Below, piece after piece: positions 25,501 to 64,000 of a stretch of DNA of 64,000 nt. The notes below the pieces were generated by a model. It was not told where the DNA came from. It did no database searches and saw only the letters and a list, made by a program, of their open reading frames with translations. Source of the stretch: Hypanus sabinus (lineage: Eukaryota). Numbering within the stretch: position 1 is the first letter of the stretch; the number at the start of each line of letters is the position of its first letter. The DNA is taken from contig NC_082723.1 in assembly GCF_030144855.1 (NCBI RefSeq), forward strand, positions 37,138,001-37,202,000. The letters run 5' to 3'. The position numbers and the translations under genes are program-made.

Positions 25501-28426
25501 AGAAGAAAGAAAAGGATAATAAATTTGAATGCATTGTTAGGGATGAAAAGAGAGGAGGAGGTGGAGAGTATCTTAAATGTATCTATTTTAATGCTAGGAG
25601 CATTGTAAGAAAGGTGGATGAGCTTAAAGCGTGGATTGATACCTGGAATTATGATGTTGTAGCTATTAGTGAAACATGGTTGCAGGGTGTGATTGGCAAC
25701 TAAATATTCCTGGATTTAGTTGCTTCAGGTGTGATAGAGTAGGAGGGGCCAGAGGAGGAGGTGTTGCATTGCTTGTCCGAGAAAATCTTATAGCGGTGCT
25801 TTGGAAGGATAGATCAGAGAGCTCCTCTAGGGAGGCTATTTGGGTGGAATTGAGGAATGGGAAGGGTGTAGTAACACTGATAGGAGTGTATTATAGGCCA
25901 CCTAATGGGGAGCGTGAGTTGGAAGAGCAAATGTGTAAGGAGATAGCAGATATTTGTAGTAAACACAAGGTGGTGATTGTGGGAGATTTTAATTTTCCAC
26001 ATGTAGACTGGGAAGCTCATTCTGTAAAAGGGCTGGATGGTTTAGAGTTTGTGAAATGTGTGCAGGATAGTTTTTTGCAACAATACATAGAAGTACCAAC
26101 TAGAGATGGGGCAGTGTTGGATCTCCTGTTAGGGAATGCGATAGGTCAGCTGACAGATGTATTTGTTGGGGAGCACTTCGGGACCAGTGATCACAATAGC
26201 ATTAGCTTCAATATAATTATGGAGAAGGACAGGACCTAGAGTTGAGATTTTTGATTGGAGAAAGGCTAACTTTGAGGAGATGCAAAGGGATTTAGAGAGA
26301 GTGGATTGGGTCAAGTTGTTTTATGGGAAGGATGTAATAGAGAAATGGAGGTCATTTAAGGGTGAAATTATGAGGGTACAGAATCTTTTAAGTTCCTGTT
26401 AGGTTGAAAGGAAAGGTTAAAGGTTTGAAAGCACCATGGTTTTCAAGGGATATTAGAAATTTGGTTCAGAAAAAGAGGGATGTCTACAATAGATATAGGC
26501 AGCATGGAGTAAAGGAATTGCTCGAGGAATATAAAGAATGTAAAAGGAATCTTAAAGAGATTAGAAAAGCTAAAAGAAGATACGAGGTTGGTTTGGCAAA
26601 TAAGGTCAAAGTAAATCCAAAAGGTTTCTAGTTATATTAAAAGCAAGAGGATAGTGAGGGATAAAATTGGCCCCTTAGAGAATCAGAGTGGTCAGCTATG
26701 TGTGGAGCCGAGGGAGATGGGAGAGATTTTGAACGATTTCTTCTCTTCGGTATTCATTAAGGAGAAGGATATTGAATTGTGTAAGATGTGGGAAACAAAG
26801 AAGTTATGGAACCTATGGCAATTAAAGAGGTGGAAGTACTGGCGCTTTTAAGAAATTTAAAAGTGGATAAATCTCCGGGTCCCGACAGGATATTCCCCAG
26901 GACCTTGAGGGAAGTTTGTGTAGAAATAGCGGGAGCTCTGACAGAGATCTTTAAAATGTCATTAGAAACGGGGATTGTGCCGGAGGATTGGCGTATTGCT
27001 CATGTGGTTCCATTGTTTAAAAAGGGTTCTAGAAGGAAACCTAGCAATTATAGACCTATCAGTTTGACATCAGTGGTGGGTAAATTAATGGAAAGTATTC
27101 TTAGAGATAGTATTTATAATTATCTGGACAGACGGGATCTGATTAGAAGTAGCCAGCATGGATTTGTGCGTGGAAGGTCATGTTTGACAAACCTTATTGA
27201 ATTTTTTGAAGAAGTTACGAGGAATGTTGACGAGGGTAAGGCAGTGGATGTAGTCTATATGGACTTCAGCAAAGCCTCTGACAAAGTTCCACATGGAAGG
27301 TTAGTTAAGGTTCAGTCGTTAGGTATTAATGCTGGAGTAATAAAATGGATTCAACAGTGGCTAGATGGGAGATGCCAGAGAGTAGTGGTGGATAATTGTT
27401 TATCGCGATGGAGGCCGGTGACTAGCGGGGTGCCTCAGGGATCTGTTTTGGGGCCAATGTTGTTTGTAATATACATAAATGATCTGGATGATGGGGTGGT
27501 AAATTGGATTAGTAAGTATGCTGATGATACTAAGGTAGGAGGTGTTGTGGATAATGAGGTGGGTTTTCAAAGCTTGCAGGGAGATTTATGCCGGTTAGAA
27601 GAATGGGCTGAACGTTGGCAGATGGAGTTTAATGCTGAGAAGCGTGAGGTTCTACATTTTGGCAGGAATAATCCAAATAGAACATACAGGGTAAATGGTA
27701 GGGCACTGAGCAATTCAGAGGAACAGAGAGATCTAGGAATAACAGTGCATAATTCCCTGAAGGTGGAGTCTCATGTAGATAGGGTGGTGAAGAAGGCTTT
27801 TGGAATGCTGGCCTTTATAAATCAAAGCATTGAGTACAGAAGTTGGGATGTAATGTTAAAATTGTACAAGGCATTGGTAAGGCCAAATTTGGAATATTGC
27901 GTGCAGTTCTGGTCACCAAATTATAGGAAAGGTATCAATAAATTAGAGAGAGTGCAGAGACGATTTACTAGGATGTTACCTGGGTTTCAGTACTTAAGTT
28001 ACAGAGAAAGGTTGAACAAGTTAGGTCTCTATTCATTGGAGCGTAGAAGGTTGAGGGGGGATTTGATCGAGGCATTTAAAATTTTGAGAGGGATAGATAG
28101 AGTTGACGTGAATAGGCTGTTTCCATTGAGAGTAGGGGAGATTCAAACGAGAGGACATGATTTGAGAGTTAGGGGGCAGAAGTTTAAGGGAAACACGAGG
28201 GGGTATTTCTTTACTCAAAGAGTGATAGCTGTGTGGAATGAGCTTCCTGTAGAAGTAGTAGAGGCCAGTTCAGTTGTGTCATTTAAGGTAAAATTGGATA
28301 GGTATATGGACAGGAAAGGAGTGGAGGGTTATGGGCTGAGTGCAGGTAGGTGGGACTAGGTGAGATTAAGAGTTCGGCACGGACTAGGAGGGCCAAGATG
28401 GCCTGTTTCCGTGCTGTGATCGTTAC
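25501..28426 (+). mobile_element. Young CR1 LINE, near-complete ORF2 (APE endonuclease + RT), with frameshifts
   Basis: YFNARSI...ETWL, GVYYRPPN, VGDFNFP, SDHNSI; RT ORF 26788..28359 (523 aa) with GVPQGSVLGP and YADD. Confidence 0.92.
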
Positions 28427-31900: not shown

Positions 31901-34900
31901 CTGTGATTCTCTTTCTCTCAGAAAAGCACAATGTCAAGAACAAAAACACCTGTCCTATCTGTGGTTCCTAGACTGGCATCATCAGCAATTTATAATCTAC
32001 AAAAAGTGTAAGCACATCCCAAAGGCTGTCTCAAAAAAGATAATTTTATGCAAATTACATTAAATAGGAACCTGCCCACCCACCCATTCAATATGATCAA
32101 TAGCAGCACTTTAGCATAGCAGCTAAAGCTTTACAACTCCAGCAACTGAAGTTCAGTACAATGTGCTGTCTGTAAGGACTTTGTACAATCTCCCTGCACT
32201 GACATGGCTTTCTTCTGGGTGCTCCAGATGGGCTAGTGAGTAAAAGACTCTTAGATAAGCACATTAATGAAAGAGAAATGCAGGACTATGTGGGAGGGAA
32301 GGGTTATATGGTTCTTGGGGTAGGTAAAAGGGTCAGTACAACACCATGGGCCCAAAGGCCTGTACAGGGCTGTACTGTTCTATAGTACATGTAAAAATTA
32401 GTTGCTCCAAATGTCAGTTTCTCTTCAGTGCCATTCCCCAGTCTTTCAAAAAGATATGTCTCCTCTTTAATTAACATCAATGATCTTACTTCCATAGCTC
32501 TCCAGTGTTGAGGAAGAGATTCACCAATCTGTGCAAGAAATTCCTTTAAATAACTAACTCCTTTGCCACTTGAGACTCTTGCACTAATATAAATTTCTCA
32601 TAGATCTTGTCATGCCCATCCTAGAATTGTCTTTCAATAATGTTATTCCTCATGTTTCAAACACAATAATTTAAATAACTTGCAGTGGAAACCTGCCCAT
32701 CCAGGAATTAGCCCGGTAAACCCTTTTTTTAGGACTGCTTACAACACCAGTACAGTATATATTTTTTAAATATATCATTTAAATAAATAGACACAAACTC
32801 CAGTTGTGGCCCCGTCCTGTACAACTGCAACTCCCTGCTAGGCTACATGTCAACATTTTGAGATTTATGTAGACCACCACCTAGATCTCCCAATATTTCA
32901 CTTATTTACAAAATAGGTTGCTTTTACTTCCATTTGAAGCCCTTTAATTTGCCAAACTTTTACCTATTCAGTCTGTATCCTGTTGCAGAATGGAAATATT
33001 AGCATGTTCCCGTAGTTAACACTGTCATCAGCAAATGTGAATGCTTTCTCTGGGTCATTAAATTAAAAATTAAATAAACTGTGGGCCAAGGCATGATCTT
33101 TGAGGCACTTCACTAATATGCTTTCAGAATGAGAAACCCCCATTTATTCTAACAATTTTTCTCCTCTAGAATACAGGCAGAGTGTTTTCAATTATGGAGG
33201 ATGGAAGACAATTTGCAAAAGGGGGGAGAAATAAATTTCATGTTTTTTTTAAAACCTTGATATTGTCACTTAACAAATTCTTAGACCAAATGATGCTTCC
33301 CAGCCTGCTCCATCATTTTGACATATCTTCAATCTGTTCTCAAATTGTCCCTAATTTCTTATTGTTCAAAATTTATCAGATCAAAGATTATCCTAAGAAA
33401 TGTTTCCTTGTATCTTTAAACAATTAGCTCATTGCCTTGAGAGTTAGTTCAAAACTTTTCAGTGAGAAGAAACTCTCAACATTTACAAATACTGCCTCTC
33501 AGGAATATTTACATAGAGAGAATGAGATGGTTTCTATCTCCAACAAAATCCCATCTTAAAATAACAAAATTCCCCACAAATTTAAATAGGACAAGAAAAA
33601 CAGCGTGGGGTTCAGATGCTGAGTGTTCTGCCAGGAACAAATCTTCATCGTTCTTTTAACACCTTAAAACACAAACCAGGAATCTAATGGAAGACTTGCA
33701 ATTCTAAATCACAAGCAACTAGACAGAATTCAAAACGAACAACCCACTTAATTAGCACAGCATATACCACCAGCAGCATGTCTCGTATTTGGCAGAGCTT
33801 CTTTGAACTCTATCGACCGAAATTCACTACAAAAACACCACATTCTCAAGGGCATTTAGAAATGAACATTACCAACAAGACGGGATCTGATTAGAAGTAG
33901 CCAGCATGGATTTGTGCGTGGAAGGTCATGTTTGACAAACCTTACTGAATTTTTTTGAAGAAGTTACGAGGAATGTTGACGAGGGTAAGGCAGTGGATGT
34001 AGTCTATATGGACTTCAGCAAAGCCTTTGACAAAGTTCCACATGGAAGGTTAGTTAAGAAGGTTCAGTCGTTAGGTATTAATGCTGGAGTAATAAAATGG
34101 ATTCAACAGTGGCTAGATGGGAGATGCCAGAGAGTAGTGGTGGATAATTGTTTATCGCGATGGAGGCCGGTGACTAGCGGGGTGCCTCAGGGATCTGTTT
34201 TGGGGCCAATGTTGTTTGTAATATACATAAATGATCTGGATGATGGGGTGGTAAATTGGATTAGTAAGTATGCCGATGATACTAAGATAGGAGGTGTTGT
34301 GGATAATGAGGTGGATTTTCAAAGCTTGCAGGAAGATTTATGCCGGTTAGAAGAATGGGCTGAACGTTGGCAGATGCTGAGAAGTGTGAGGTTCTACACT
34401 TTGGCAGGAATAATCCAAATAGAACATACAGAGTAAATGGTAGGGCATTGAGGAATGCAGAGGAACAGAGAGATCTAGGAATAACTGTGCATAGTTCCCT
34501 GAAAGTGGAGTCTCATGTAGATAGGGTGGTGAAGAGGGCTTTTGGAACGCTGGCCTTTATAAATCAAAGCATTGAGTACAGAAGTTGGGATGTAATGCTA
34601 AAGTTGTACAAGGCATTGGTAAGGCCAAATTTGGAATATTGTGTGCAGTTCTGGTCACCGAATTATAGGAAAGATATCAATAAATTAGAGAGAGTGCAGA
34701 GACGATTTACTAGGATGTTACCTGGGTTTCAGCAATTAAGTTACAGAGAAAGGTTGAACAAGTTAGGTCTCTATTCATTGGAGCATAGAAGGTTGAGGGG
34801 GGATTTGATCGAGGTATTTAAAATTTTGAGAGGGATAGATAGAGTTGACGTGAACAGGCTGTTTCCATTGAGAGTAGGGGAGATTCAAACTAGAGGACAT

Positions 34901-45300: not shown

Positions 45301-48300
45301 CTTCCTCATGGATTCGGACATGCTGCCTGCCAGCAGCGTAGCGTTGTACACTTCCAGCAGGTCGGGGCCCATCCTGTTCCACAGAGCCGAATACAACTTG
45401 ACCGGTGAGCCGTCACTTCCGGGAGTCCTACCCGACTCAAAGGAACGGACGAAGCCAGTCAGCTCGTCCAGGGTCAGCGGCTGCTCCAGACTCTCACGTC
45501 GCTTCTGGGAGTCCTACCCGACTCAAAGGAACGGACGGAGCCAGTCAGCCCGTCCAGGGTCAGCGGCTGCTCCAGACTCTCCCACTTGCCATCGTCTAAG
45601 ACCTGCGAGATAGACAACAGGAAGTTGCGGGAGACTGTGTAGACTGTGGCCTTTTCTCCGTACAGACTGGCATAGAAGGACCTGCAGATCCTCAGTATGT
45701 CTGTCTGCGAAGATGCGACTGAGCCGTCCTCTTCCTTAAGGTTGTGGATCACAGAGCTCCCCCTGTGCACCTTTTGGAAGAAGAATCGTGAACACGTCTC
45801 GTCCTGCTCCACGGTTTGGACCCTCGATCGGAAGATGATCTTGGAGGACTCGGCAGCAAAGTGCTGGGCCTGCCGGGCCTTCACCTCCCGAAGTTCCTCC
45901 CTGACATCCATCCCCTCGACTGCAGAAGGAGGAGTTGCTGCAACTCTGTCTGGAGTTTATGCAGTTCCCTCTGCCCCTGCCTTGCTCCCTGGATACCCTT
46001 GCGGATGAAGAACCTCTTGATGTTCTCCTTGGTGGCTTCCCACCAGTGAACTGGGGAATCAAAGAAGGCTTTCAAGTTTCTCCAACCCATGTACTCCTTC
46101 TCTAGTTCCTCAATGTTCTCTGGGGTCAGCAGCTTGACGTTCAGCTTCCACGTCCCCCTCCCTGCCTTCCGGTCCTCCTGCAGGTGGCTCGCAGGAGGCA
46201 GTGGTCAGAGAGGAACACTGGCGTGACGTCGGTGGTTCTGACCGTGAGGGGCTCTGACAGGACGAGGAAGTCGATCCGGGAATGGGCTGAGCCGTCCCAT
46301 CGTGTCCAGGTGGCTTGCGGCTGAGATCCACCTGTGGGGTCGCCAAAGGCGTTGCGCAGCTTGGCTGTCTTCACCGTATCCGTCAGGAGTCTGGAGGTAC
46401 TCTCCAGCCTGCCGTCGGCGCTGCCGGATTGTCCAGCCGCACCAATGGTGCAGTTGAAGTCTCCGGCCGGGACGTCACCAGCAGTGGTGGGAGCTGCTCG
46501 AGGGCGGCCCGCCGCTCGCTCTGCACGGGGGAGGTGTACACGTTGATCAGCCGGAGCAGAGTGCCCTGGTATTTGATGTCTGCTACCAGGAGGCACCCGA
46601 CAACCACCTCTTTGGTTTGGGTGATTGCGAAGTTGCCTCCCTGTAGCAGAGTTCCCAGGTCGGAAGCGCGATAGTTGTTACCCCCTGACCACACCAACAA
46701 ACCCCGGGTCCACCAACGTGACCGCCTCCGTTAGTTGCCGAGGTGTGGCAGTCCACACTCCTGGAGGAAGGTCACGTCGGCCTTTACGGAGTCCAAGTAC
46801 TGGAGCGTGCTGACGCATCGCCCGGTACTCTTCAGACTGCACACATTGACAGATGCCAGTGAAATATCCGCCATTAAAGTTCTTTATTTTAACAGCACAC
46901 TGTCCTTACCTTCGCAGTCCTGAGCCTTTATGCCCACGGCCTCTGCGAAGTCCTTCACCTTCTGTGGGCTCAGGAACTGCAGGTTATTCTCCCCTGTGTG
47001 TGGCAGTTCCTGTTCTGTGCCTGGGGGCTTGGTGTCTCCCAGGTCTGCTGCCTCTTCAGGCTGCGAGGCACCATACACCATCCCGGGTTCCCGGAGCCGG
47101 GGGTCTCTGGTGGTCTCCGCCTCCCGTGCTCGTGCTTGGGGGGTGGCCAGCAGGCTTTCCTCACTCCCTCTCCTCCCCTCCGCCGGCTCTGTCCGCCGCT
47201 GCTGGCCTCCCCCAACTCCTTCCTCGTCTGAAGTGGGCAGGTTGCTGGGATCTGCTTGGTCCCCTGCCCTTCTCTTCACACCTTCCCTTCTTTCTGCCCT
47301 CTGTCGTTTTGCCGGAGCTTTTTGGGCCTTCTTTCTTTTGCCCGCAACGCTCCAGCCTTCCTCCCCCTCGGCTCTCCCCTCCTCCATGGACGACTCCTCC
47401 TTTTCCTGTGGCAGGTCTTGGAGGGTCTGCAAGGGGGTGGGGGCCCTCGGGGTGGCTGTGCCTTCTCCTCTGCTGGTGTCTTCCGTTGCTTCGGGCGCAG
47501 CCTCTGCAGGGGTGGCAGGTACATCCGATCCTGCCGGGGCCCTTCCAGTGCCAGCACCTCCCCTGGTCGCCTGTGCATAGGTGCCGGCACGTTTCGGACA
47601 GGCCCTGTACAGGTGGTCGGTGCTTCCACAGAGATTGCAGGACTTGGCCTGCATGCAGTCCTTGGTGAGGTGGCCCTCCACCTTGCAGTTCTTGCAGATT
47701 GTAGCTCTGCACTGGGCTGCGACCTGCCCCGCCTTGCCGCAGTTGCGGCACAGCCTGGGCTGCCCGGCGTAGACCAGGTAGCCTCGGTTCCCTCCTATGG
47801 CGAAGACCGAGGGTGGGTAGAGACATTGCCGTTCGAGTCGACCCTCAGATTCACCTTCACCTGCCGTTTACTTGTCCAGCATCCCAGGCTGTCCTTTACG
47901 TCCAGGCAGGCTCCTACACTCTCCACATACCGAGCGAGGAATGTAAGGACATCGACCACCGGCACGTAGGGGTTGAACATGTGCACGGTGGCAGTCCATT
48001 CCTGCTGGGCGGCAGCAAAGAGGGGCTGTGCTTGTAGCTGCGACAGCGGCGCCTCTCTCCCCTTCTCCTGGAATTGCAGGAACAGCTTCTGCCACCCTGC
48101 GGGTCGTCGGAAGGTGACATCGAAGAACCCAGCAAAGTCCTGGACACAGTAGATGTCGTCGATCGTGAAACTGCAACAGTTCATCAGGACCTTCTGGATG
48201 AAGGTCACTCTCGAAAATCCGTTGCCCTTGCTCTGGCGTCGCACTGTCAGCCGGACAGTGTCCTTGATGCCCAGGCCCCGGGCCGATGCGCTGTTGTCTT

Positions 48301-51300
48301 GAGCCATCCTGTTCACCGCTGTCGTTGTCGTCGCTGGTATGAGATGTGAGATTGGGAGCCAATCAGCATTAGGATCCACCCCTGCATCAGCACAAAACCT
48401 TCTCCACCTTCCGATAAGAATAGAAACTACACGTAATCTAAGCCAAAAAGCTGAGAAGCGATCTGATAAGAACAGATACTACACTTGATCTTAGCCAAAA
48501 GGCAGCAGAGAGACACGTCAAAACCTCCCTGTACATGGACGACGGCAACGTCTTCTGCTCTGATCCGAGGTCAGTTCGCAGGCTGATCAGCATCTGTGAA
48601 CAGTTCGAGCAGGCGTCGGGGGCCAGGGTCAACCGCACAAAGAGCGAAGCCATGTTCTTTGGCAACTGGCCCGACTGATCCAGCGTCCCTTTCACCATCA
48701 GGGCTGATCACCTGAAGGTGTTGGGGATCTGGTTCGGAGGGGCCGAGGCGTGCAACAAGAACTGGCAGGAGCGAGATGGACACAGTGGGGTGATTCCCTG
48801 AGCAGACTGTCCAGTTCATCTGGCAAAATGCCTCATCGCCTGACCTCACCAACAGGCACCAAGACCTTACCTGGCTGGCGGTGAGAGGGGCCCTCCCAGT
48901 CCGATCCCTCCTGTACACCCGGAACGTCGCCTCTACACCCCTCTGCCCACGGGAGGACTGCAGAGAGGAGGAGTTGGTGACCCACCTCTTTGCACACTGT
49001 GGGTTCGCGGAGAAGGTGTGGAGGAGGATGGAAGGGGCTGTGTCGAGATTCATCCCCAGCAGTTGCGTAACAGAGGACTCTCTGATCTATGGGCTGTTCC
49101 CGGGGATGCACACCGAGACCAACAAGCAGAAGGGGGAGAGGGAAGACCTTAGAAATTGGAGGCCCATCTCACTCCTGAATGTGGACTACAAGATCCTGTC
49201 CAAGGCAATCGCCAACAGGGTCAAGTCTGCACTGGAGCAGGTGATCCATCTGGACCAAATCTGTGCCATACCGGGCAGGAAGATCTCAGACAGCCTCACG
49301 CTGCAGAGGGACAGAATTGCCTATGTGCAGGACAGGGAGGTGGACGCCTGCCTGGTCAGCTTGCACCAGGAGAAAGCCTTCGACAGGATATCGAACAAGT
49401 ACATGGCAGATGTACTCTCCAAAATGGGATTCGGGGAGGGAATCCGGAATTGAATCAAACTGCTCTACAACAGAATCTGTAGCGCAGTCCAGGTCAACGG
49501 GTGAGAAACAGACAGCTTCCCCATCAGGTCTGGAGTCAGGCAGGGTTGCCCTCTCTCCCATCTTGTTCGTGTGCTGCGTAGAACCCTTTGCCAAAGCCAT
49601 CAGGAGGGATGGGGGCATAGGAGGGGTGACGCTATCAGGCAGTGGAGGGACCCAAGTCAAAACCTCCCTGTACATGGACGACGTCACCATCTTCTGCTCT
49701 GATCCGAAGTCAGTTCGCAGGCTGATCAGCATCTGTAAACAGTTCGAGCAGGCATTGGGGGCCAGGGTCAACCGCGTGAAGAGCGAAGCCGTGCTCTTCA
49801 GCAACTGGTCCGACTGATCCAGTGTCCCCTTCACCATCAGGGCTGATCACCTGAAGGTGTTGGGGATCTGGTTTGGAGGGGCTGAGGCATGCAACAAGAA
49901 CTGGCAGGAATGGACTGCCAAGGTCAAACAGAAACTGGGGCTGTGGGGAGGGCGCTCCCTATCGATAGTGGGAAAGAACCTGGTCATCAAGTGTGAGGTG
50001 CTCTCAGGGCTGCTGTACTTGGCGCAGGTGTGGCCAGTCCCCCGCTCCTTCAGCTCGGAAATCACCCGAGCAGTCTTCAGATTTGTCTGGGGGATCCAAG
50101 ATGGAGCGGGTCAGATGGACCACCATGCACAAGCCCCTGAACAATGGGGGCAAAAACGTCCCCAATGTCACCCTTGCCCTGATGGCCAGCTTTGTGTGTG
50201 GCTGCATTAGGTTGTGTGTGGATCCCAGGTACATGGGCACCAAGTACCATTATGGGCCCAGGTTCTACCTGTCGCCCTGGCTACGAAGGATGGGTCTGGC
50301 CCCTTTCCCGCGCAACACCCCTGTCAGCTGGTTGTTGCAGCCATACCTGTCCTTCGTAGAGAAGTTCTTTCAGGTCGACGCCTTTGACCCACAGGGCCAT
50401 CAGGCAGTGGCCAGCACATAAGGTCCTGCAGGCACTGCAGAAGAAGGACGTGATGGACATGGTGGGGTAGTTCCCTGAGCAGACAGTCCAGTTCATCTGG
50501 AAAAATGCCTCATCGCCAGACCTCACCAACAGGCACCAAGACCTCGCCTGGCTGGCGGTGAGAAGGGCCCTCCCAGTCCAATCTCTCCTGTACGCCCAGA
50601 ACGTCGTCTCCACACCCCTCTGCCCACGGGAGGACTGCAGTGAGGAGGAGTCGGTGACCCACCTCTTCGCACACTGTGAGTTCACGGAGAAGGTGTGGAG
50701 GAGGATGGAAGGGGCAGTGTTGAGGTTCATCCCCAGCAGCTGCGTAACAGAGGACTCTTTGATCTACGAGCTGTTCTCAGGGACGCACACCGAAACCAAT
50801 ATCCGGTGCTGCTGGCAGATCATCAACTCGGTCAAAGATGCTCTTTGGTTGACCCGAAATTTGATGGTCCACCAGCACGCGGAGATGTCCGTGGGGGAAT
50901 ACTGCCAGCTGGTACATTCTCAGCTGCAGGTGTACGTGCTGAGGGGCGCACTCAAATTTGGTGCAGCCACCGCAAGGGCCCGGTGGGGAAGGACCACAGT
51001 CTAGGGTTCTTCTCCCGTGGGAGTTGAGGGGTAGAGGGGTTGGGGGTATACCCCAGTGAATGTAAATATGAAAGAACAGAGTGCCATGTGGGTGGCAAAA
51101 TTTTGAATTTTGAAAATGTTAAAACAGTAATGGTAATAACTGTAAAGAATTGAAAGTCATTGAATGGTTGTTGTATATAATTTTATTTTTGAATACAGTT
51201 TTTTTTAATTAAAAAATCAGTTTTTTGAATAAAGAATATTTTGTTTTTAAAAAAAAAATCAGTTTCCTGCTGTAACGTGAGTTGACTGGATCTGTAGCCA

Positions 51301-54300
51301 GTGCAATAGCTTAATCAGTTTTTTAGAATTTAATACGACTTCCCTGATTTTGTATCCAAAGCTTCAATCAATAAAAACAAATAATACATGTTGTTTTCAT
51401 CACCTTATCTATCTTTCCTGTTTCAGAGAACTGAGTTTAAACCTCTGAACTTCAAGATGCCTCTTTTCTACACTTTTCTGTCTCCTGTCATTATATTTTG
51501 GTGGTGTTCTCTTTGCAAGTTTTCTGCCCACTGTATCAATGTATTGATAGCTTCTTACAGTCTATAACTTTTGTTTTCCTCAGCATAAACCCAGGCCAGT
51601 TTTGAGAGAGCAAAAAAAAGATGTGGGTTGGGAATACGGTTCAAAAATAGGGAAATATCTATTTCCAGATTAAATGTACCATGTCTTCTGTTCCTATATT
51701 CTTTATCCACACATGCTAATCTGTTGTCATTTAAGGCTTTGCCCATGACTAGCTGGCACCTAGTCTCATTTGCCATTCAGCCCCTGTGCTTAATGACCAA
51801 TGCTGGGAGGAGATGTTACAATTTTTTACTTCCAAATCCTCCATATCTCTCCCATGGACTTACAATATTCTGGCCTCTTAATTATTTCTGTATTTAAGTG
51901 AACCATTTTCATCTGATGTACTTGTAGCTGCCAAGGTCTAAAAGCTGTGGTTTCATCCCTGCACAGCTCTGCCTCTGCCTTTCTGCATCACTCCCTAAAA
52001 ACCCCTTTTGTGTTTTAGTAGCAAAATTTCATTTGAAAATGGCTTGTTAACTATCATTGGTGCTATATGTAATGATCTCTTGAAATATCCAATTCATGGG
52101 TGCTATTCCATTGTTTTAAAATGAAATAATAACTTTGTCTTTACTCAATATCACATGAAGATTTTATGCTACAACAATTAAAATTGATAACAAATTTCAT
52201 GGCATATGCAGGTGATATTAAATTCTGATTCTTTAATAATGAAAATCGCTATCTGTTAATTTCATCTTTTAGAATTATGCTTCTCAGCTGCTAGTGAGCC
52301 AAGGGTTAGATCTAACCCAAGGAGCTGACTTCTTGAATCCCAACATGCAGCAAAAGCTTGAAGGAGTAAAAAGTTGGATTCGGCGTGAAATACAAAAGGA
52401 ACTTAAAATCAAAGAAGGTACAGAGAACTTGCGCAAGGTGACGACAGATAAAAAAAATCTGGCATGTATAGAAAACATTCTGAAGATCTCAAATCAAAAA
52501 CTGGAATCCCTGCATTGGGAGCTTCAGGAACTGAATGCACGAATCGTCATGGAGAGGGACAATCTGAGAGGTGAGACAACCCTTTCTCTAAACCTCAACA
52601 GCAGAAACATCATTGCTCGAACTGGTGGTTAAATTTCAATTTAGATTTGTACTGTATTCCTCTTAACCAGTCATACAGTTAGCCACATGTTTTTATATAG
52701 GCTGTGATATTGATATTGATCTTGACTCTTGCTTGGTGGCTGAGTGTAGCCCTCTCTGTAGTATAATACACAGCTATAGTACGTTGTGGGATCTTCCCTG
52801 AGTAAATGGCAGGATTGCAGCACTTGGCTACCTACAAGTACAAGTGTACAGCACAAAAATCCAAAAGTAGTGAAACTTTTAATAACATATTCTAGGACGT
52901 CTGGGATTCTGCTTAGCTGACATCTTTGTTTTCTTGCTGTGCTGTGAAATTGTTTTATTGATCGGTGTTGTCATTTATGCTTCACTCAAGCCTCCACTTG
53001 CATTTCTTCATATAACTTCAGCTGTGTTTCCTCTTTGATGAGCATCCTTTTTAACCCCCCCCCCCCCACCAACCCCCAGCCTCTCATTCTGTCATGTATC
53101 CACTCCACTCTTACTTCCTTGATTCTGAACAGTTAGAGTACTATACCTGACTGCTGCCATCCATAGGCAGATGCAGGGGCAAGCTTTGTGTTTCGGATTT
53201 CTCCATACTGCATATTGCAAAAAGCAGGTCTCATTCATATAGGTAGGGAAAGATATAGGGGATGTTTAAGATTTGTTTTCTCTCTAAAATTGAAGGGCTT
53301 TCCAAAAGAAAATGTTGTGTGCATAGGTATAGCCTTTTCTCTAGTGTTCACAGTATTTATGTGTTTTGCAGACTATCTTGGGAGAGGACTTTTTTTTTAA
53401 AACTGAAATTGGAGAGATTTTTGGGAAATTTTTTACCTTAAGCCTTCTTTCATAATGTAATCAGAATGGGAAGTGCACACTTCATGTACCAAAAAAGCAG
53501 TGGTGCATGTCTGAACTAGCAAGATCTTGCTTGATTCAACACAGAGCATACGGGCATTCTGATAATTGAGATAATGTTAGTATGAAGGTGGCCGGATATG
53601 TTGTAATAACTGAGCAATTCATTGCTAGGTTGACTTTCTATAATATTTTCTTGTATGCCATCAAAGTGATTTATGACATGTATTATAAGTCTAGTACAAT
53701 TGCAACAATGCAGTTTTAGAACTAAATTAACGAAGGAGTTCATAAAAATACTCTTGGACCTATGATGCTGCATATCTGATATTTCAATTTTAGTTTTCAC
53801 TGTGTGCATTATAGTTCGGTTATTGTGATTTGATAGTCCATCTCTGTAAGGCTGGCAATATAATATACCTTCAAATTTCACACACTCTTTGAAGTATAAC
53901 TGAAACACTTAACACAATTTATGCGTTAAGAGGTGATAAGAAGATTCATTGAGACTTCATAAGATAGTCCTAGTCCTGCTGAAGGGTTTCAGCCTGAAAC
54001 GTCAACTGTACTCTTTTGCACAGATGCTGCCTGGTCTGCTGGGTTCCTCCAGCATGTTCTGTGTGTTGCTTGGGTTTCCAGCATTTGCAGATTTTCCCTT
54101 GTTCATAAGATAATAGTTTTCAGCTGGGCGAAGAAAAGTTCTTGCATTGCTTTTTGCCTCAAAAGTTTCTAAAAATTCTTTTTGCACAATTGGTACCGTG
54201 AAGTCCAGTGAGTTGAAATAAACAACATCTATGGTATTGTTCAGGATTCCGGAAAAAGCTCTCTGTACTTTTATTAAAGATGCAGTGGGATCTTTATCAA

Positions 54301-59499: not shown

Positions 59500-62400
59500 A
59501 ACTAAGATGGCGGTTTCATTTTAAAAATACTTGCTTGTTTTTGATTTCGCCATTTTTTTTGTCGTCTTCGTCCTATAATGCCTTTCTTATCACATCCTAA
59601 CTTTTATTTGTTCAGGTTTTAACCTGATTTATAAGTTACCAGTGTTCATATTTTTGTTTTCTTTTTACTAGCAATTATATTAAGAAGTCTGTTTTAGCAT
59701 AGTGTTAATTACTTTTTAGGATTTTGGGTGGATTTCTTTTTCTCCTTTATATATTTGGAGTCGCCTTCTGGAGACATGGGGGTAGATTAAGTGTCACGCT
59801 TTTTTTCCTGGCCTCCTTTAGGCTCAGGAGGATCTCTTTTTCATGGGTGGTGGGTGGGGGGGTTTCTTTCTAATTCTATTGGTCTTTTTATTAGTTTTTC
59901 TGGTTTTTTCATTTGGGCTGATTTCAAACTATTAAAATGTGTGATGTGTCGTCATTTCCGATTCCTCCACTTATTTTTGTTCCTCTTCCAGGTGCATGAG
60001 TTCCTACTTTGGTTAACTCTTTATATACCAAAGGGTTGATTTTAGAAATATGGCTCAGACCATTAATTTTGTCTCTTGGAATACTAATGGCTTAAACGGA
60101 AAAAGATTTTAAAAGTATTCCAAAGACTAAAAGTGCATATTATTTTTGCACAAGAAACTCATGTGAGGAAAGAGGACAATTAGCATTTTTTTAGGTTTTG
60201 GAGTGGTCAACAGTACCATTCGAATTCAAACGCCAAAGTAAAAGGAGTTTCAATTTTTATTGACTCCTCCATTACATTTTTTCAACACGATATTATTTTG
60301 GATCCGAATGGTAGATTTTTGTTAATTACTGGGTTACTTTTTAATAAGAAGGTTGCTGTGGTTAATGTTTACGCTCCAAACGTGGATTATCCTGATTTCT
60401 TCAAGTCTTTATTTACTTCTCTACCTAATCTAAACGAATATATGTTAATAATGGGTGGTGACTTCAATTGTTGTTTAAATCCTTTGCTGGATAGATCTAT
60501 ATCCATTCAGACTTTACCAAATAAGTCGGCCACTTATATCAATTCTTTTTTGACTGATACTGGGATTTTCGATATTTGGAGATTTCTGCATCCTAAGGAC
60601 AAAGATTTTTCATTTTTCTCACATGTCTATCATACTTACTCGAGAATTGACTACTTTTTCATTGACTCTTGTTTTATTCCATCTGTAATTGGTTGTAATT
60701 ATGACGTTATAGCCATCTCTGATCATGCTCCAATGAAACTTTCTATTAAATTAATGGACACAGCTCTTGGTACTAAGCAATGGCAATTTGATTCTACCTT
60801 ACTACAAGATCCGGATTTTTTTAAATTTATAAAGGAACAGATTGATTTCTTCTTTTCAACTAATTCCATGGATGAAATCTCCTGCGGAACACTTTTAAAG
60901 CATATATACGTGGACAGATTATCTTCTATTCTGTTGGTTTGAGAAAACATATTAAGAAGAAAACTCTTTTATTTGTTGATAAGATTAAAGAAATTGACAA
61001 GAAATATTCGATTGCTCCTAGTAAGGAGCTTTACAAGCAAAGGGTTGAGCTTCAAATGGAACACAGTTTATTACTTACATTTTCAATTGAAAATCAATTA
61101 ATGAAAATCAGAAGTGATTTTTATATACATAGTGATAAATCGGGTAAACTGTTAGCTAACCAATTGAAGAATGCTTCGGTTAAACGTCGAATTATTAAGA
61201 TTCGCCAACAGAATGGTGAAATGACAATTAATCATGATGAGATAAATAAATCTTTTCAAGATTTTTGTACCTCCCTGTATCATTCTGAATTTCCTCATGA
61301 TCATAATACCATGCATGATTTTTTAGGGAAATTGAATTTTCCAAAATTGTCATCTGAAGAACTTTTAATATTAGAAACTCCTATTACGGATGCAGAAATT
61401 AAAGGTGTTATTTCCTCTATGAGTTCCGGGAAAGCACGAGGTCCAGATGGGTATACAGTGGAATTTTAAAAGTTTTTTTCCTCTTCTCTTTCTCCTTGGT
61501 TATGCAGGGTTTTTGAAGAAGCAATTAGACTAGGTAAACTACCACAATCTTTTTATAGAGCTTCCATTTCTTTAATATTGAAAAAAGATAAAGACCCTAC
61601 AGACTGTGCATCCTATAGACCAATATCTCTATTGAATGTAGATTCCAAGATCTTTTCCAAGTTATTGGCGACCAGGCTGTAGAAGGTATTACCTCAAATG
61701 ATCTCGGAGGATCAAACTCGTTTTATTAAAAGTCGGTCTTCCTTTTTTCAATATTAGGAGATTATTGAATATTGTTTATACTCCTTCAAGTAGTACCTCA
61801 GAATGTGTCATTTCATTAGATGCGGAGAAAGCATTTGATAGTTGAATGGCCATATTTATTTACTGTGCTTGAGAAGTTTAATTTTAGTCCGACATTTATG
61901 TCCTGGATTAAATTGATATATCATACTCCAGTAGCCTCGGTTTTTACTAATAATCAAAGATCTTCCTTTTTTTGTTTATTTTGGGGTACCAGGCAAGGCT
62001 GTCTTCTTAGTCCATTATTATGTGATATAGCTCTGGAACCTTTGGCAATTGCTATTAGAGAATCACCTAACATTTTTGGCATTACTCGAGGGATAGATAT
62101 ACATAAGTTATCATTATACGCAGATGATTTGTTATTATACATTTCTGATCCTGTGAAATCCATTCCTGCAATTATATCATTATTGGCTCAGTTTAGTGAT
62201 TTTTCCAGGTATAAATTGAATCTTAATAAGAGTGAATTGTTCCCCTTAAATAGACAGGTTCCAATTTGTGGAAATTTACTTTTTAAATTAGTTAATGACT
62301 TTGTTATATACTTGGGGATTAAAATTACAAAAAATCATAAGGAGTTATTCAAGGTTAATTTTTTACCCTTAATTGATCAAATTAAATGTTTGTTTACTAA

Positions 62401-64000
62401 ATGGTCACCATTGTCTTTATCTCTGATAGGTCAGATTAATGCTATTAAGATGATTATTTTACCCAAGTTCTTGTATATATTTCAAGCGGTACCAAGTTTC
62501 ATTCCAAAATCCTTTTTTGACAATGTTGGTTCAAAAATTTTCTCATATATATGGCAGAATAAAAATCCTGGATTAGGTAAAAGATATTTACCTAAGTCAA
62601 AGAAGGAAGGTGGATTGGCATTGCCTAATTTTAGATTTTATTATTGGGCAATTAATATTTGATATTTGAATTGTTGGTTAAGGGATTTGGATTTATCTCC
62701 TAGCCCTCATTGGGTAAACCTGGAAACTAAATCTGTACAAGGATTTTCATTGGGTTCTATTTTAGGGTCTTCTCTTCCCTTTGCTCTTTCTAAATTGCAT
62801 AAACGAATTGACAATCTGATAGTTAAGCACACTTTACGTATCTGGTTTCAATTTCGGAAATTTTTTGGGTTGAATCAGTTTGTTTTAGCAATTCCTATTG
62901 TATCCAATTTCTTTTATCATCCCTCTATTATAGACCAAGCTTATTCAGCTTGGAAGACTCATGATTTTCTGATTTATTTTTGGAGAAATTATTAGAACTA
63001 AATCCTTTTCAGAAAGGTGTAATATCAAATGTTTACAATATAATTATGAAAATGCATTCGGAGGCCTTTTATAAGATTAAAAATGATTGGGAAAGAGAAC
63101 TTAACCTTACTATCCCTATTGAGAATTGGGATAAAATTCTTCAATTAGTTAATTTATCCTCCATGTGCTTTACATTCATTGATACAGTTTAAAGTAGTGC
63201 ACAGGGCTCATATGTCCAAGGATAAATTGGCTCGTTTTTATTCCCATATAAATCCTATATGTGACAGATGTCATTCTGAGATAGCTTCTTTAACTCATAT
63301 GTTTTGGTCATGTTCACTTTTGAAAAAATATTGGAAAGACATTTTCGATATTATTTCCACGGTTTTGAACATTTATTTACAACCTCATCCTATTACTGTA
63401 ATCTTTGGTTTACCAATGATAGTCAATTCATTTATCTTCTTCTGCTTGTCAGATGATTGCATTCCTTACATTAATGGCTAGAAGATCTATTTTGTTGAAT
63501 TGGAAAGAAATTAATCCCCCTACCATATTTCATTGGTTTTCTCAAACTATGTTATGTCTAAATTTGGAAAAAATTAGAAGTGTCATATATGACCCTTCTA
63601 TTAAATTTGAAAAGACTTGGAGGCCACTTATTCAATATTTTCACATGATGTAATTTGACCTTGTTCCAATCCTATTTGATTATATGTATGTTGAGAGGAT
63701 CGGAGTTGGGGACACTAATGATTCTTTGCCTTTTTGTAGATACTATAAACAGCCCATTTAAAAAATAAAATAAAATAAAATCCCTTTTTTTCTCTTTATT
63801 AGTTAGTGGTTAATTTGTTAGATTAGTTTTTCTTAGGGCAATAATTTCTTTTTCCTTTCTCTTTTCTGTTTTTTTTCAACATGATATACCTAGTTTTTTT
63901 TGTTGTTGTTTTGTTTATATGATAGTTGTATCATTCATGATTTGGGAAGACTTAACTATATTGTACTTATTGCTTGTGTATCCTTTTATGTTCATTTTAA
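59500..64000 (+). mobile_element. L1-clade LINE (AT-rich; disrupted ORF2 plus 3' UTR) in PKN3 intron 6
   Basis: ORF2 from ATG 60050 (MAQTINFVSWNTNGLN): NVYAPN, GGDFNC, YSRIDYF, ISDHAP, GTRQGCLLSPLL, LYADD, CDRC...HMFWSC; multiple stops and frameshifts. The 5' boundary is approximate. Confidence 0.9.

Follow-up and report, generated by a model that had tools for sequence, protein, structure and literature searches.

We found that a LINE copy in the genome of the ray Hypanus sabinus carries at its 5' end two stacked heads derived from U2 snRNA, one pristine and one worn, both of which were present in the RNA from which the copy was made. The two heads end at the same nucleotide of U2, and the stretch of U2 that spans this nucleotide recurs at the junctions of the copy itself. 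The double-headed ray LINE is a clear new example of the known snRNA-headed Tx1 elements and not a new phenomenon. All positions refer to the window, that is, the whole stretch of 64,000 nucleotides that was analysed (Table 1).

Table 1. Positions of the U2 heads, the parts of the LINE copy and the junction motifs in the window
Feature	Position	Strand	Description
Outer U2 head	48463..48503	-	U2 nt 12-52, 0 mismatches; nt 12-14 = junction microhomology
Inner U2 head	48411..48462	-	U2 nt 1-52, 8 mismatches
5' UTR spacer	48308..48410	-	103 nt, from inner head to ORF1 ATG; inverted CCAAT pair at 48350-48364
ORF1	47307..48307	-	ATG at 48307; two ZCCHC3-type RNA-binding domains plus CCHC knuckles
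ORF2 aa 1-676	44760..46874	-	APE endonuclease and N-terminal half of RT; five reading-frame segments
Segment C	48508..49122	+	ORF2 aa ~679-767, then aa 934-1064; first letters precede 48508
Segment B	49122..51257	+	ORF2 aa 497-1124, stop 51002-51004, AT-rich 3' UTR, AATAAA at 51228, A10 run
ATCAGTT, 5' junction	44748..44754	+	followed by 5 filler bases GTGCA (44755-44759) before the inverted cDNA
ATCAGTT, 3'	51258..51264	+	immediately past the A10 run; candidate 3' target-site duplication

Two U2 heads with different wear

Read on the minus strand, the outer head is identical to the U2 consensus in the Rfam alignment from nt 12 to nt 52, and it is followed by an inner head that matches nt 1-52 with eight differences. 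A sequence-only reading of this DNA had already described these two copies and their common end, and strand reading and Rfam agree with it. The extent which that reading gave for the outer head holds as an exact match; its first three letters, nt 12-14 (GCC), double as the first letters of the adjoining RT-coding segment, so that only nt 15-52 are unambiguously U2. Across the whole window the Rfam U2 match scores 48.2 bits (gathering score 46; E=1.6e-6), and an exact 34-mer from the outer head occurs once in the window and in none of 100 shuffles. With the outer head excluded, the inner head alone is matched by the Rfam U2 model at 28.7 bits (E=2.4e-4). Its mismatches fall at U2 nt 11, 14, 23, 28, 30, 38, 42 and 51 and comprise five transitions and three transversions, and the GUAGUA that pairs with the branch point now reads GTAGTT.

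Both heads have G52 as their last nucleotide. The outer head passes into nt 1 of the inner head through a blunt 52|1 join without microhomology, and the inner head directly adjoins unrelated 5' UTR sequence. Further candidate U2 sequence was rejected on either side of the heads. What would be U2 nt 1-11 before the outer head, where Rfam aligned 13 nt, is actually RT coding sequence, matching the paralogous segment at 49637-49660; and a low-confidence Rfam alignment of the U2 3' domain inside the 5' UTR is not credible, as it rests on a GATTGG/CCAATC hairpin.

Over the 41 nt that the heads share, mismatches to U2 number 0/41 in the outer head and 7/41 in the inner one (Fisher p=0.012). This contrast, measured over 41 nt of one copy, is moderate evidence for a stack of heads that differ in age at this 5' end, as the sequence-only reading had proposed. 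When local decay of ~4-5% per lineage is assumed, the probability that the outer head would remain intact is 0.12-0.19, and the probability of eight or more changes in the inner head is 0.001-0.005; overall, the latter probability under local decay alone is put at about 0.001-0.015.

A partly inverted LINE copy and the RNA behind it

Judged by its coding sequence, the host of the heads is a dead, frame-broken and partly inverted copy of a Tx1-like (Keno-like) LINE. Its ORF1, which carries a single frameshift near 47815, contains the Pfam domains RBD_ZCCHC3_1st and RBD_ZCCHC3_2nd together with a zinc knuckle, as is characteristic of ORF1 in the Tx1 clade, and shares 67% identity with a protein of Mobula hypostoma that is annotated 'ZCCHC3-like'. 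In ORF2, Pfam detects Exo_endo_phos, RVT_1 and zf-RVT, in the order APE-RT-zf when mapped on a relative of 1130 aa (P0153); this is the Tx1-clade arrangement of an N-terminal APE, an RT and a C-terminal zf-RVT, with no restriction-like endonuclease. The RT piece scores 219 bits (50% identity) against a protein from Danio that bears the name 'transposon TX1 149 kDa', and 109 bits against human L1 ORF2p. These scores serve as a proxy for placement in the clade, and the name is not clade-specific, because NCBI applies it to L1-like plant proteins as well. The best relatives of the RT come from sharks, amphibians and fish. Relatives were found neither in two scans of metagenomes (one with the ORF1 alignment, one with the ORF2 relative P0026) nor in a scan of viral contigs, and a search of sequencing runs gave partial matches only (share at most 0.23), none of them recorded as RNA. 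The APE and RT architecture and the Tx1-type ORF1 agree with the earlier assignment to the Tx1 clade; this copy does not reside in a U2 gene.

The copy is composite. The inverted part of ORF2 contains an 85-nt tandem duplication (45411-45581), and about 536 bp are absent from segment C between its two ORF2 parts (aa ~767 and aa 934). Segments C and B are joined at a CAA microhomology, segment B being 8-9% diverged from the overlapping stretches of the inverted segment and of C, and a tandem duplication affects the final ~40 nt of the 3' UTR.

The 5' inversion of the copy has the geometry of twin priming. On the minus strand the inverted part runs as far as ORF2 aa 676; the coding sequence is taken up again on the plus strand from 48514 at aa ~679-681, the inverted and direct parts overlapping by 4 nt (GGCA) at the join. 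The motif ATCAGTT stands at both ends of the copy; as a target-site duplication it is an uncertain candidate, since three copies of it fall within 100 nt at the 3' end. U2 nt 1-11 are absent at the far breakpoint of the inverted arm. Given the near-contiguous join, its short overlap and this absence, the heads are cDNA of the RNA's 5' end; the twin-priming geometry therefore means that both came from the template RNA and do not represent what is left of a local U2 gene, which bears out the earlier proposal that they belonged to the element's RNA. Since the template RNA bore both heads, its transcription started at nt 12 of the outer head or upstream. The transposed unit has a U2-derived 5' terminus outside an snRNA gene, with an inverted arm that derives from cDNA and flanks that are free of U2.

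The present site of the copy is not in a U2 gene. Rfam finds no U2 sequence in either flank at E<=10, which also rules out a decayed U2 pseudogene as the target, and the window holds no paralogous empty site for the flanks. Around this single copy we did not find the flanks that mark a Keno insertion, namely those of a U2 gene with a 3' flank from nt ~39 (TCTGTTCTTATCAGTTTAAT). The junction motif ATCAGTT corresponds to U2 nt 48-54; it occurs ten times on the plus strand of the 64 kb, and 4/10 of these occurrences lie at junctions of the LINE, including extra copies near its 3' end at 51216-51222 and 51314-51320. The shared end of the heads at nt 52 and the presence of this U2 motif at the junctions fit a boundary that is defined by the target site.

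How the heads may have been acquired

The likeliest origin of the heads, which we put forward tentatively, is that transcription read through, time after time, from U2 genes into copies inserted there at nt 52/53. We place it ahead of template switching because the wear of the heads differs, because both end at nt 52 and because ATCAGTT lies at the junctions. The nuclease of the family would cut the top strand past ...ATCAG (U2 nt 52), and a full-length copy landing in a U2 gene would be transcribed from the start of that gene, so that its RNA would acquire U2 1-52 as a leader. The worn inner head would then stem from an earlier passage through a U2 gene and would afterwards have evolved as element sequence; the pristine outer head would come from the last U2 gene to host the source copy. 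We infer accordingly that the source copy resided in a U2 gene, used the U2 promoter and captured its heads in series. The template RNA itself began with U2(at least 12-52)-U2(1-52)-5'UTR-ORF1. The copy seen today is best explained as one old insertion by twin priming: cDNA synthesis started from the top-strand end within ORF2 (aa 676) and continued to the RNA's 5' terminus, leaving the 5' UTR and both heads inverted against the 3' half. The blunt 52|1 junction is exactly what a headed cDNA inserted at U2 nt 52/53 would leave.

Several points weigh against read-through. Promoters of the snRNA type are linked to 3'-box processing and make long polyadenylated RNAs poorly. In addition, a single copy was examined, its flanks are free of U2 even at the permissive threshold used, and the published Keno 3' junction begins TCTGTTC..., in place of which the ray copy has just TCAGTTT past its tail. 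It is conceivable, if rather doubtful, that rays carry an autonomous Keno-like LINE which still cuts a U2-like site (TA|TC...CAG|TTT) and owes its most productive transcripts to read-through from U2 genes, gaining one 52-nt leader per passage. Were this the case, the passages of a promoter-parasitic element could be counted from its stacked heads and their graded wear, and snRNA heads could arise by a 5'-transduction route separate from the template-switch route proposed for crocodilian SINEU.

Template switching is a possible but less probable origin. On reaching the 5' end of the LINE's RNA, the RT would change template to U2 snRNA, or to the RNA of a second headed element, and would copy this acceptor as far as its 5' end. 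The inner head would date from one such switch in an ancestor, and the outer one from a recent switch or from the event that made this copy. It is documented that SINEU gained U1/U2 sequence at the 5' end recurrently and that Tx1-Mar families bear U1/U2 heads (Kojima 2015, PMC4494074), and this copy shows other template discontinuities in its inversion join, in the CAA join of segments C and B and in the 536-bp skip. However, end-to-end jumps reach the 3' end of the acceptor, and U2 ends near nt 188, not at nt 52. An exactly shared end at nt 52 would have a chance of ~1/20 or less, because head extensions in SINEU-2 vary by up to 22 nt (PMC4494074). The blunt junction between the heads, without microhomology, also speaks against a jump, and the U2 nt 48-54 motif at the copy's target site ties nt 52 to the nuclease and not to the RT.

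It is improbable that the tandem arose within the element from one ancestral head, through slippage or unequal exchange, giving heads of equal age whose differences would be due to chance, to selection on the terminal head or to conversion of the outer head by U2 genes. The exact 52-nt tandem unit would suit such an event, the copy contains other tandem duplications (in ORF2 and at the end of the 3' UTR), and Kojima noted partial duplications within snRNA heads (PMC4494074). At equal ages, however, the observed contrast in wear would be unlikely (p=0.012), the outer head matches the U2 consensus itself with no derived state shared between the heads, and gene conversion of a 41-nt tract is improbable. 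That the outer head is target DNA, the remnant of a local U2 gene or pseudogene hit by the LINE and not derived from RNA, would agree with the usual Keno picture of an element flanked by U2 but is contradicted by the geometry and hardly credible, the head being preceded by the LINE's own RT segment in opposite orientation (joined at aa 676/679), while both outer flanks lack U2 nt 1-11 as well as the 3' part of U2.

Relation to known elements

Iterative capture of an snRNA leader, which the sequence-only reading had proposed, was anticipated by the recurrent head addition already described (Kojima 2015, PMC4494074), and the ray copy leaves the picture of what snRNA-headed Tx1 elements are unchanged. 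What it contributes is an inversion that documents the double head in RNA, and heads whose end nucleotide agrees with the motif found where the copy itself inserted. If these observations are confirmed genome-wide, they would indicate that the target site can bring about the gain of heads, by way of read-through from snRNA genes, and would extend snRNA-headed Tx1 elements to cartilaginous fishes.

Keno, which the earlier reading rightly described as inserting into U2 genes, is a U2 snRNA gene-specific Tx1 LINE (Kojima and Fujiwara 2004, as cited in PMC4494074, PMC4640811 and PMC6136364), and its 3' flank begins at U2 nt ~39 (TCTGTTC...). Like Keno, the ray copy is an APE-type LINE with a Tx1-like ORF2 and a 5' end that bears U2 sequence; in both, the 3' flank opens with TC, and the junction motif of the ray copy is U2 nt 48-54. 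It differs from Keno in lying outside a U2 gene, without the published 3' flank from nt ~39, and in its two stacked heads, which are absent from the Keno accounts in the available text of PMC4494074, PMC4640811 and PMC6136364. A literature search for Keno in cartilaginous fishes returned nothing relevant.

The Keno-related Tx1-Mar families described by Kojima (2015, PMC4494074) include the U2-headed Tx1-11_Crp and the U1-headed Tx1-2_Crp and Tx1-4_AMi; for the heads of SINEU and Tx1-Mar that study prefers template switching, leaving the choice between it and 5' transduction undecided. The ray copy has in common with Tx1-Mar and crocodilian SINEU the presence of U1/U2-type 5' heads outside snRNA genes, their recurrent addition and the stacking of heads that differ in age. 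Unlike theirs, the ray stack sits on an autonomous type of LINE in a cartilaginous fish host, both of its heads are U2 with the same end nucleotide, and the junction motif suggests a U2-like and not a Mariner target.

The inversion itself has a parallel in L1, for which Ostertag and Kazazian reportedly described 5' inversion by twin priming in 2001. In both cases the inverted 5' part and the direct 3' part follow on from each other along the element, and where they meet there is microhomology and an overlap of a few bases; the inverted arm of the ray copy is unusually long, reaching the 5' leader of the RNA, and a third segment (B) is attached to it.

U6-L1 and other snRNA-L1 chimeric retrocopies (Buzdin 2002; Garcia-Perez 2007, as cited in PMC4494074) likewise have snRNA sequence joined 5' of LINE-derived cDNA. 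These are one-off pseudogenes with a full-length snRNA up to its 3' end, whereas the ray LINE bears a fixed 1-52 fragment twice.

Finally, it is accepted that site-specific LINEs without a promoter are transcribed together with their target. R2 and R1 are co-transcribed with rRNA, and 5' transduction is known from SVA (MAST2) (PMC4494074). As in these systems, a retroelement with a weak promoter or none would be transcribed from upstream host sequence, which is carried into new copies. In R2 a ribozyme removes the leader, whereas the ray LINE, which may draw on the U2 promoter, keeps its leader in a form that can be stacked.

Two U2-derived heads on a probable Tx1-type LINE

On the minus strand, RT-coding sequence in the opposite orientation is followed by two adjoining partial copies of U2 snRNA (the outer and inner heads), by 103 nt of 5' UTR unrelated to U2, and by an ATG at 48307. 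The sequence-only reading had described these heads as tandem U2 copies, one perfect and one with 8 mismatches, both ending at nt 52, and this description was confirmed. A U2 match across the region scored 48.2 bits in Rfam against a gathering score of 46, the inner head searched with the outer left out matched U2 at 28.7 bits (E=2.4e-4), and a 34-mer from the outer head occurs once in the window and in none of 100 shuffles. The common end point is seen at the junction between the heads, which is blunt (52/1) and has no microhomology, and again at G52 of the inner head. The outer head's nt 12-14 (GCC) also belong to the adjoining RT segment, forming a junction microhomology. Upstream of this head, Rfam placed 13 nt as U2 nt 1-11; the placement was rejected, since these 13 nt are RT coding sequence, matching a paralogous stretch at 49637-49660.

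Coordinates of the U2 heads, coding regions and junction motifs
Feature	Position	Strand	Description
Outer U2 head	48503->48463	minus	U2 nt 12-52, 0 mismatches
Inner U2 head	48462->48411	minus	U2 nt 1-52, 8 mismatches; directly adjoins outer head
ORF1	48307->47307	minus	two ZCCHC3-type RNA-binding domains and CCHC knuckles; one frameshift
ORF2 aa 1-676	46874->44761	minus	APE and N-terminal half of RT; five frame segments
Segment B	49122-51257	plus	ORF2 aa 497-1124, 3' UTR, AATAAA, A10
ATCAGTT	44748	plus	just before 5' junction, 5 filler bases from element's first base
ATCAGTT	51216	plus	element junction region
ATCAGTT	51258	plus	directly after A10 run
ATCAGTT	51314	plus	element junction region

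As judged from its coding sequence, the element fits a Tx1-type LINE. ORF1 shares 67% identity with a protein of Mobula hypostoma that carries the annotation 'ZCCHC3-like'. Relatives of the RT piece number in the tens of thousands, those with names coming from a shark, amphibians, fish and amphioxus; the RT piece matches a zebrafish 'transposon TX1 149 kDa' protein at 219 bits (50% identity) versus 109 bits for human L1 ORF2p. Scans of metagenomes and viral contigs found no match for the element. About 15-23% of the 31-mers sampled from 47900-51500 are present in each of the sequencing runs labelled as at least 11 differently coded organisms, which suggests that parts of the LINE region are near-identical among several related species or data sets of low coverage. 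Other LINE reverse transcriptase fragments at 26812-27477, 33999-34229 and 60193-62629 (23-34% identity to a Tx1-like ORF2 probe) belong to distantly related LINEs and not to the U2-headed family. The 5' UTR holds a perfect inverted CCAAT pair at 48350-48364 (GATTGG CTC CCAATC, minus strand), one arm of which matches the NF-Y consensus; the pair may belong to an internal Pol II promoter or be a mere hairpin, and its Rfam alignment to a U2 stem was rejected as a misalignment.

Geometry of the insertion

The layout was established by self-comparison of the window and by mapping onto a 1130-aa ORF2 relative. On the plus strand, the flank, ATCAGTT and 5 filler bases lead into an inverted segment (44760-48503), the reverse complement of the element between the RNA 5' end and ORF2 aa 676, both heads included. 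This is followed by a direct segment with ORF2 aa ~679-767 and aa 934-1064 (to 49122), by segment B and by ATCAGTT. The inverted and direct parts join at aa 676/679 with an overlap of 4 nt, which is the signature of twin priming. It follows from this geometry that both heads are cDNA of the template RNA's 5' end and not remains of a local U2 gene. A later chromosomal inversion was rejected, since the far breakpoint would then hold U2 nt 1-11, and it does not.

Segment B, which joins at a CAA microhomology and is 7.7-9.4% different from the overlapping parts, may derive from a template switch within the same event, or from a second insertion at a regenerated site followed by deletion. At 48770/48771 the direct segment is without ~536 bp (ORF2 aa ~768-933) kept in the neighbouring paralog at 49909-50445, a loss explained either by internal deletion or by a second skip of the template. 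An 85-nt tandem duplication at 45411-45581 (95% identity, 86-nt period), within the inverted segment's ORF2 region, postdates the insertion and is old in its own right.

The LINE inserted at the end of the tail of a repeat (44450-44745), in which a 25-nt unit occurs twice (44679-44703 and 44711-44735); the repeat's core is of a kind characteristic of interspersed repeats in sharks and rays. At the opposite end, the final ~40 nt of the 3' UTR are tandemly repeated with ATCAG between units (51183-51330), and an extra ATCAGTTTTTT lies 56 nt downstream, followed by sequence like the second unit's start. The tandem has the look of a second insertion, extremely truncated, into a regenerated site, although it may instead be a 3' repeat belonging to the element itself; the pattern as a whole could have come from successive hits on a regenerated target, from such an intrinsic repeat, or from AT-rich slippage.

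Age and origin of the heads

Over the 41 nt that the heads share, the outer differs from U2 at 0 positions and the inner at 7 (Fisher p=0.012). Provided that a single event gave rise to the paralogous segments, local decay is ~4-5% per lineage, and at this assumed rate the probability of an intact outer head is 0.12-0.19 and that of at least 8 inner-head changes is 0.001-0.005. Most of the inner-head changes therefore predate the insertion. The proposal that the heads differ in age thus gains no more than moderate support, the sequence being so short; the contrast might also come from selection acting solely on the terminal head.

The plus strand of the 64-kb window contains 10 copies of ATCAGTT, a motif corresponding to U2 nt 48-54, and four of these lie at element junctions. 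The local site, CTA/TCAG/TTT, holds both TA/TC and CAG/TTT, the latter being the head boundary. The published Keno 3' junction has the context TA/TC, the flank beginning TCTGTTC at U2 nt ~39; if this family uses that junction, then with a 5' junction at nt 52 an insertion into a real U2 gene would duplicate 14 nt.

We tentatively favour, at somewhat short of even confidence, a qualified form of the serial capture originally proposed, in which the heads arose by read-through from U2 genes hit at nt 52/53. The nuclease would prefer a U2-like site; copies inserted in U2 genes at nt 52/53 would be read through from U2 +1, so that their RNA gains a 52-nt leader; and a headed full-length cDNA reinserting at nt 52/53 would yield the blunt tandem. 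The double-headed RNA would then have inserted at the present U2-like off-target site by twin priming. As a caveat, snRNA promoters are tied to 3'-box processing and are poor makers of long polyadenylated RNA.

The main rival, which we consider rather unlikely, is template switching onto snRNA, documented for the crocodilian SINEU and Tx1-Mar families with U1/U2 heads (Kojima 2015, PMC4494074). Such jumps, however, reach the acceptor's 3' end or variable positions (spread up to 22 nt in SINEU-2), and they leave unexplained why the target carries the motif of U2 nt 48-54. Internal tandem duplication of one head, followed by unequal wear, is improbable, and a local U2 gene remnant, with no U2 match in either flank even at E<=10 in Rfam, is scarcely credible; both are less likely than read-through or template switching.

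Comparison with published U2-targeting elements

A U2-specific Tx1 family, Keno, has already been described. Also published (PMC4494074) are U1/U2 heads on Tx1 elements that are related to Keno and lie outside snRNA genes, together with the 'recurrent addition' of these heads. To these, the single dead copy on which our U2-head finding is based makes a modest addition: an autonomous copy with two unequally worn U2 heads, evidence for the presence of both in the RNA, and a connection of the head boundary to the motif at the insertion site.
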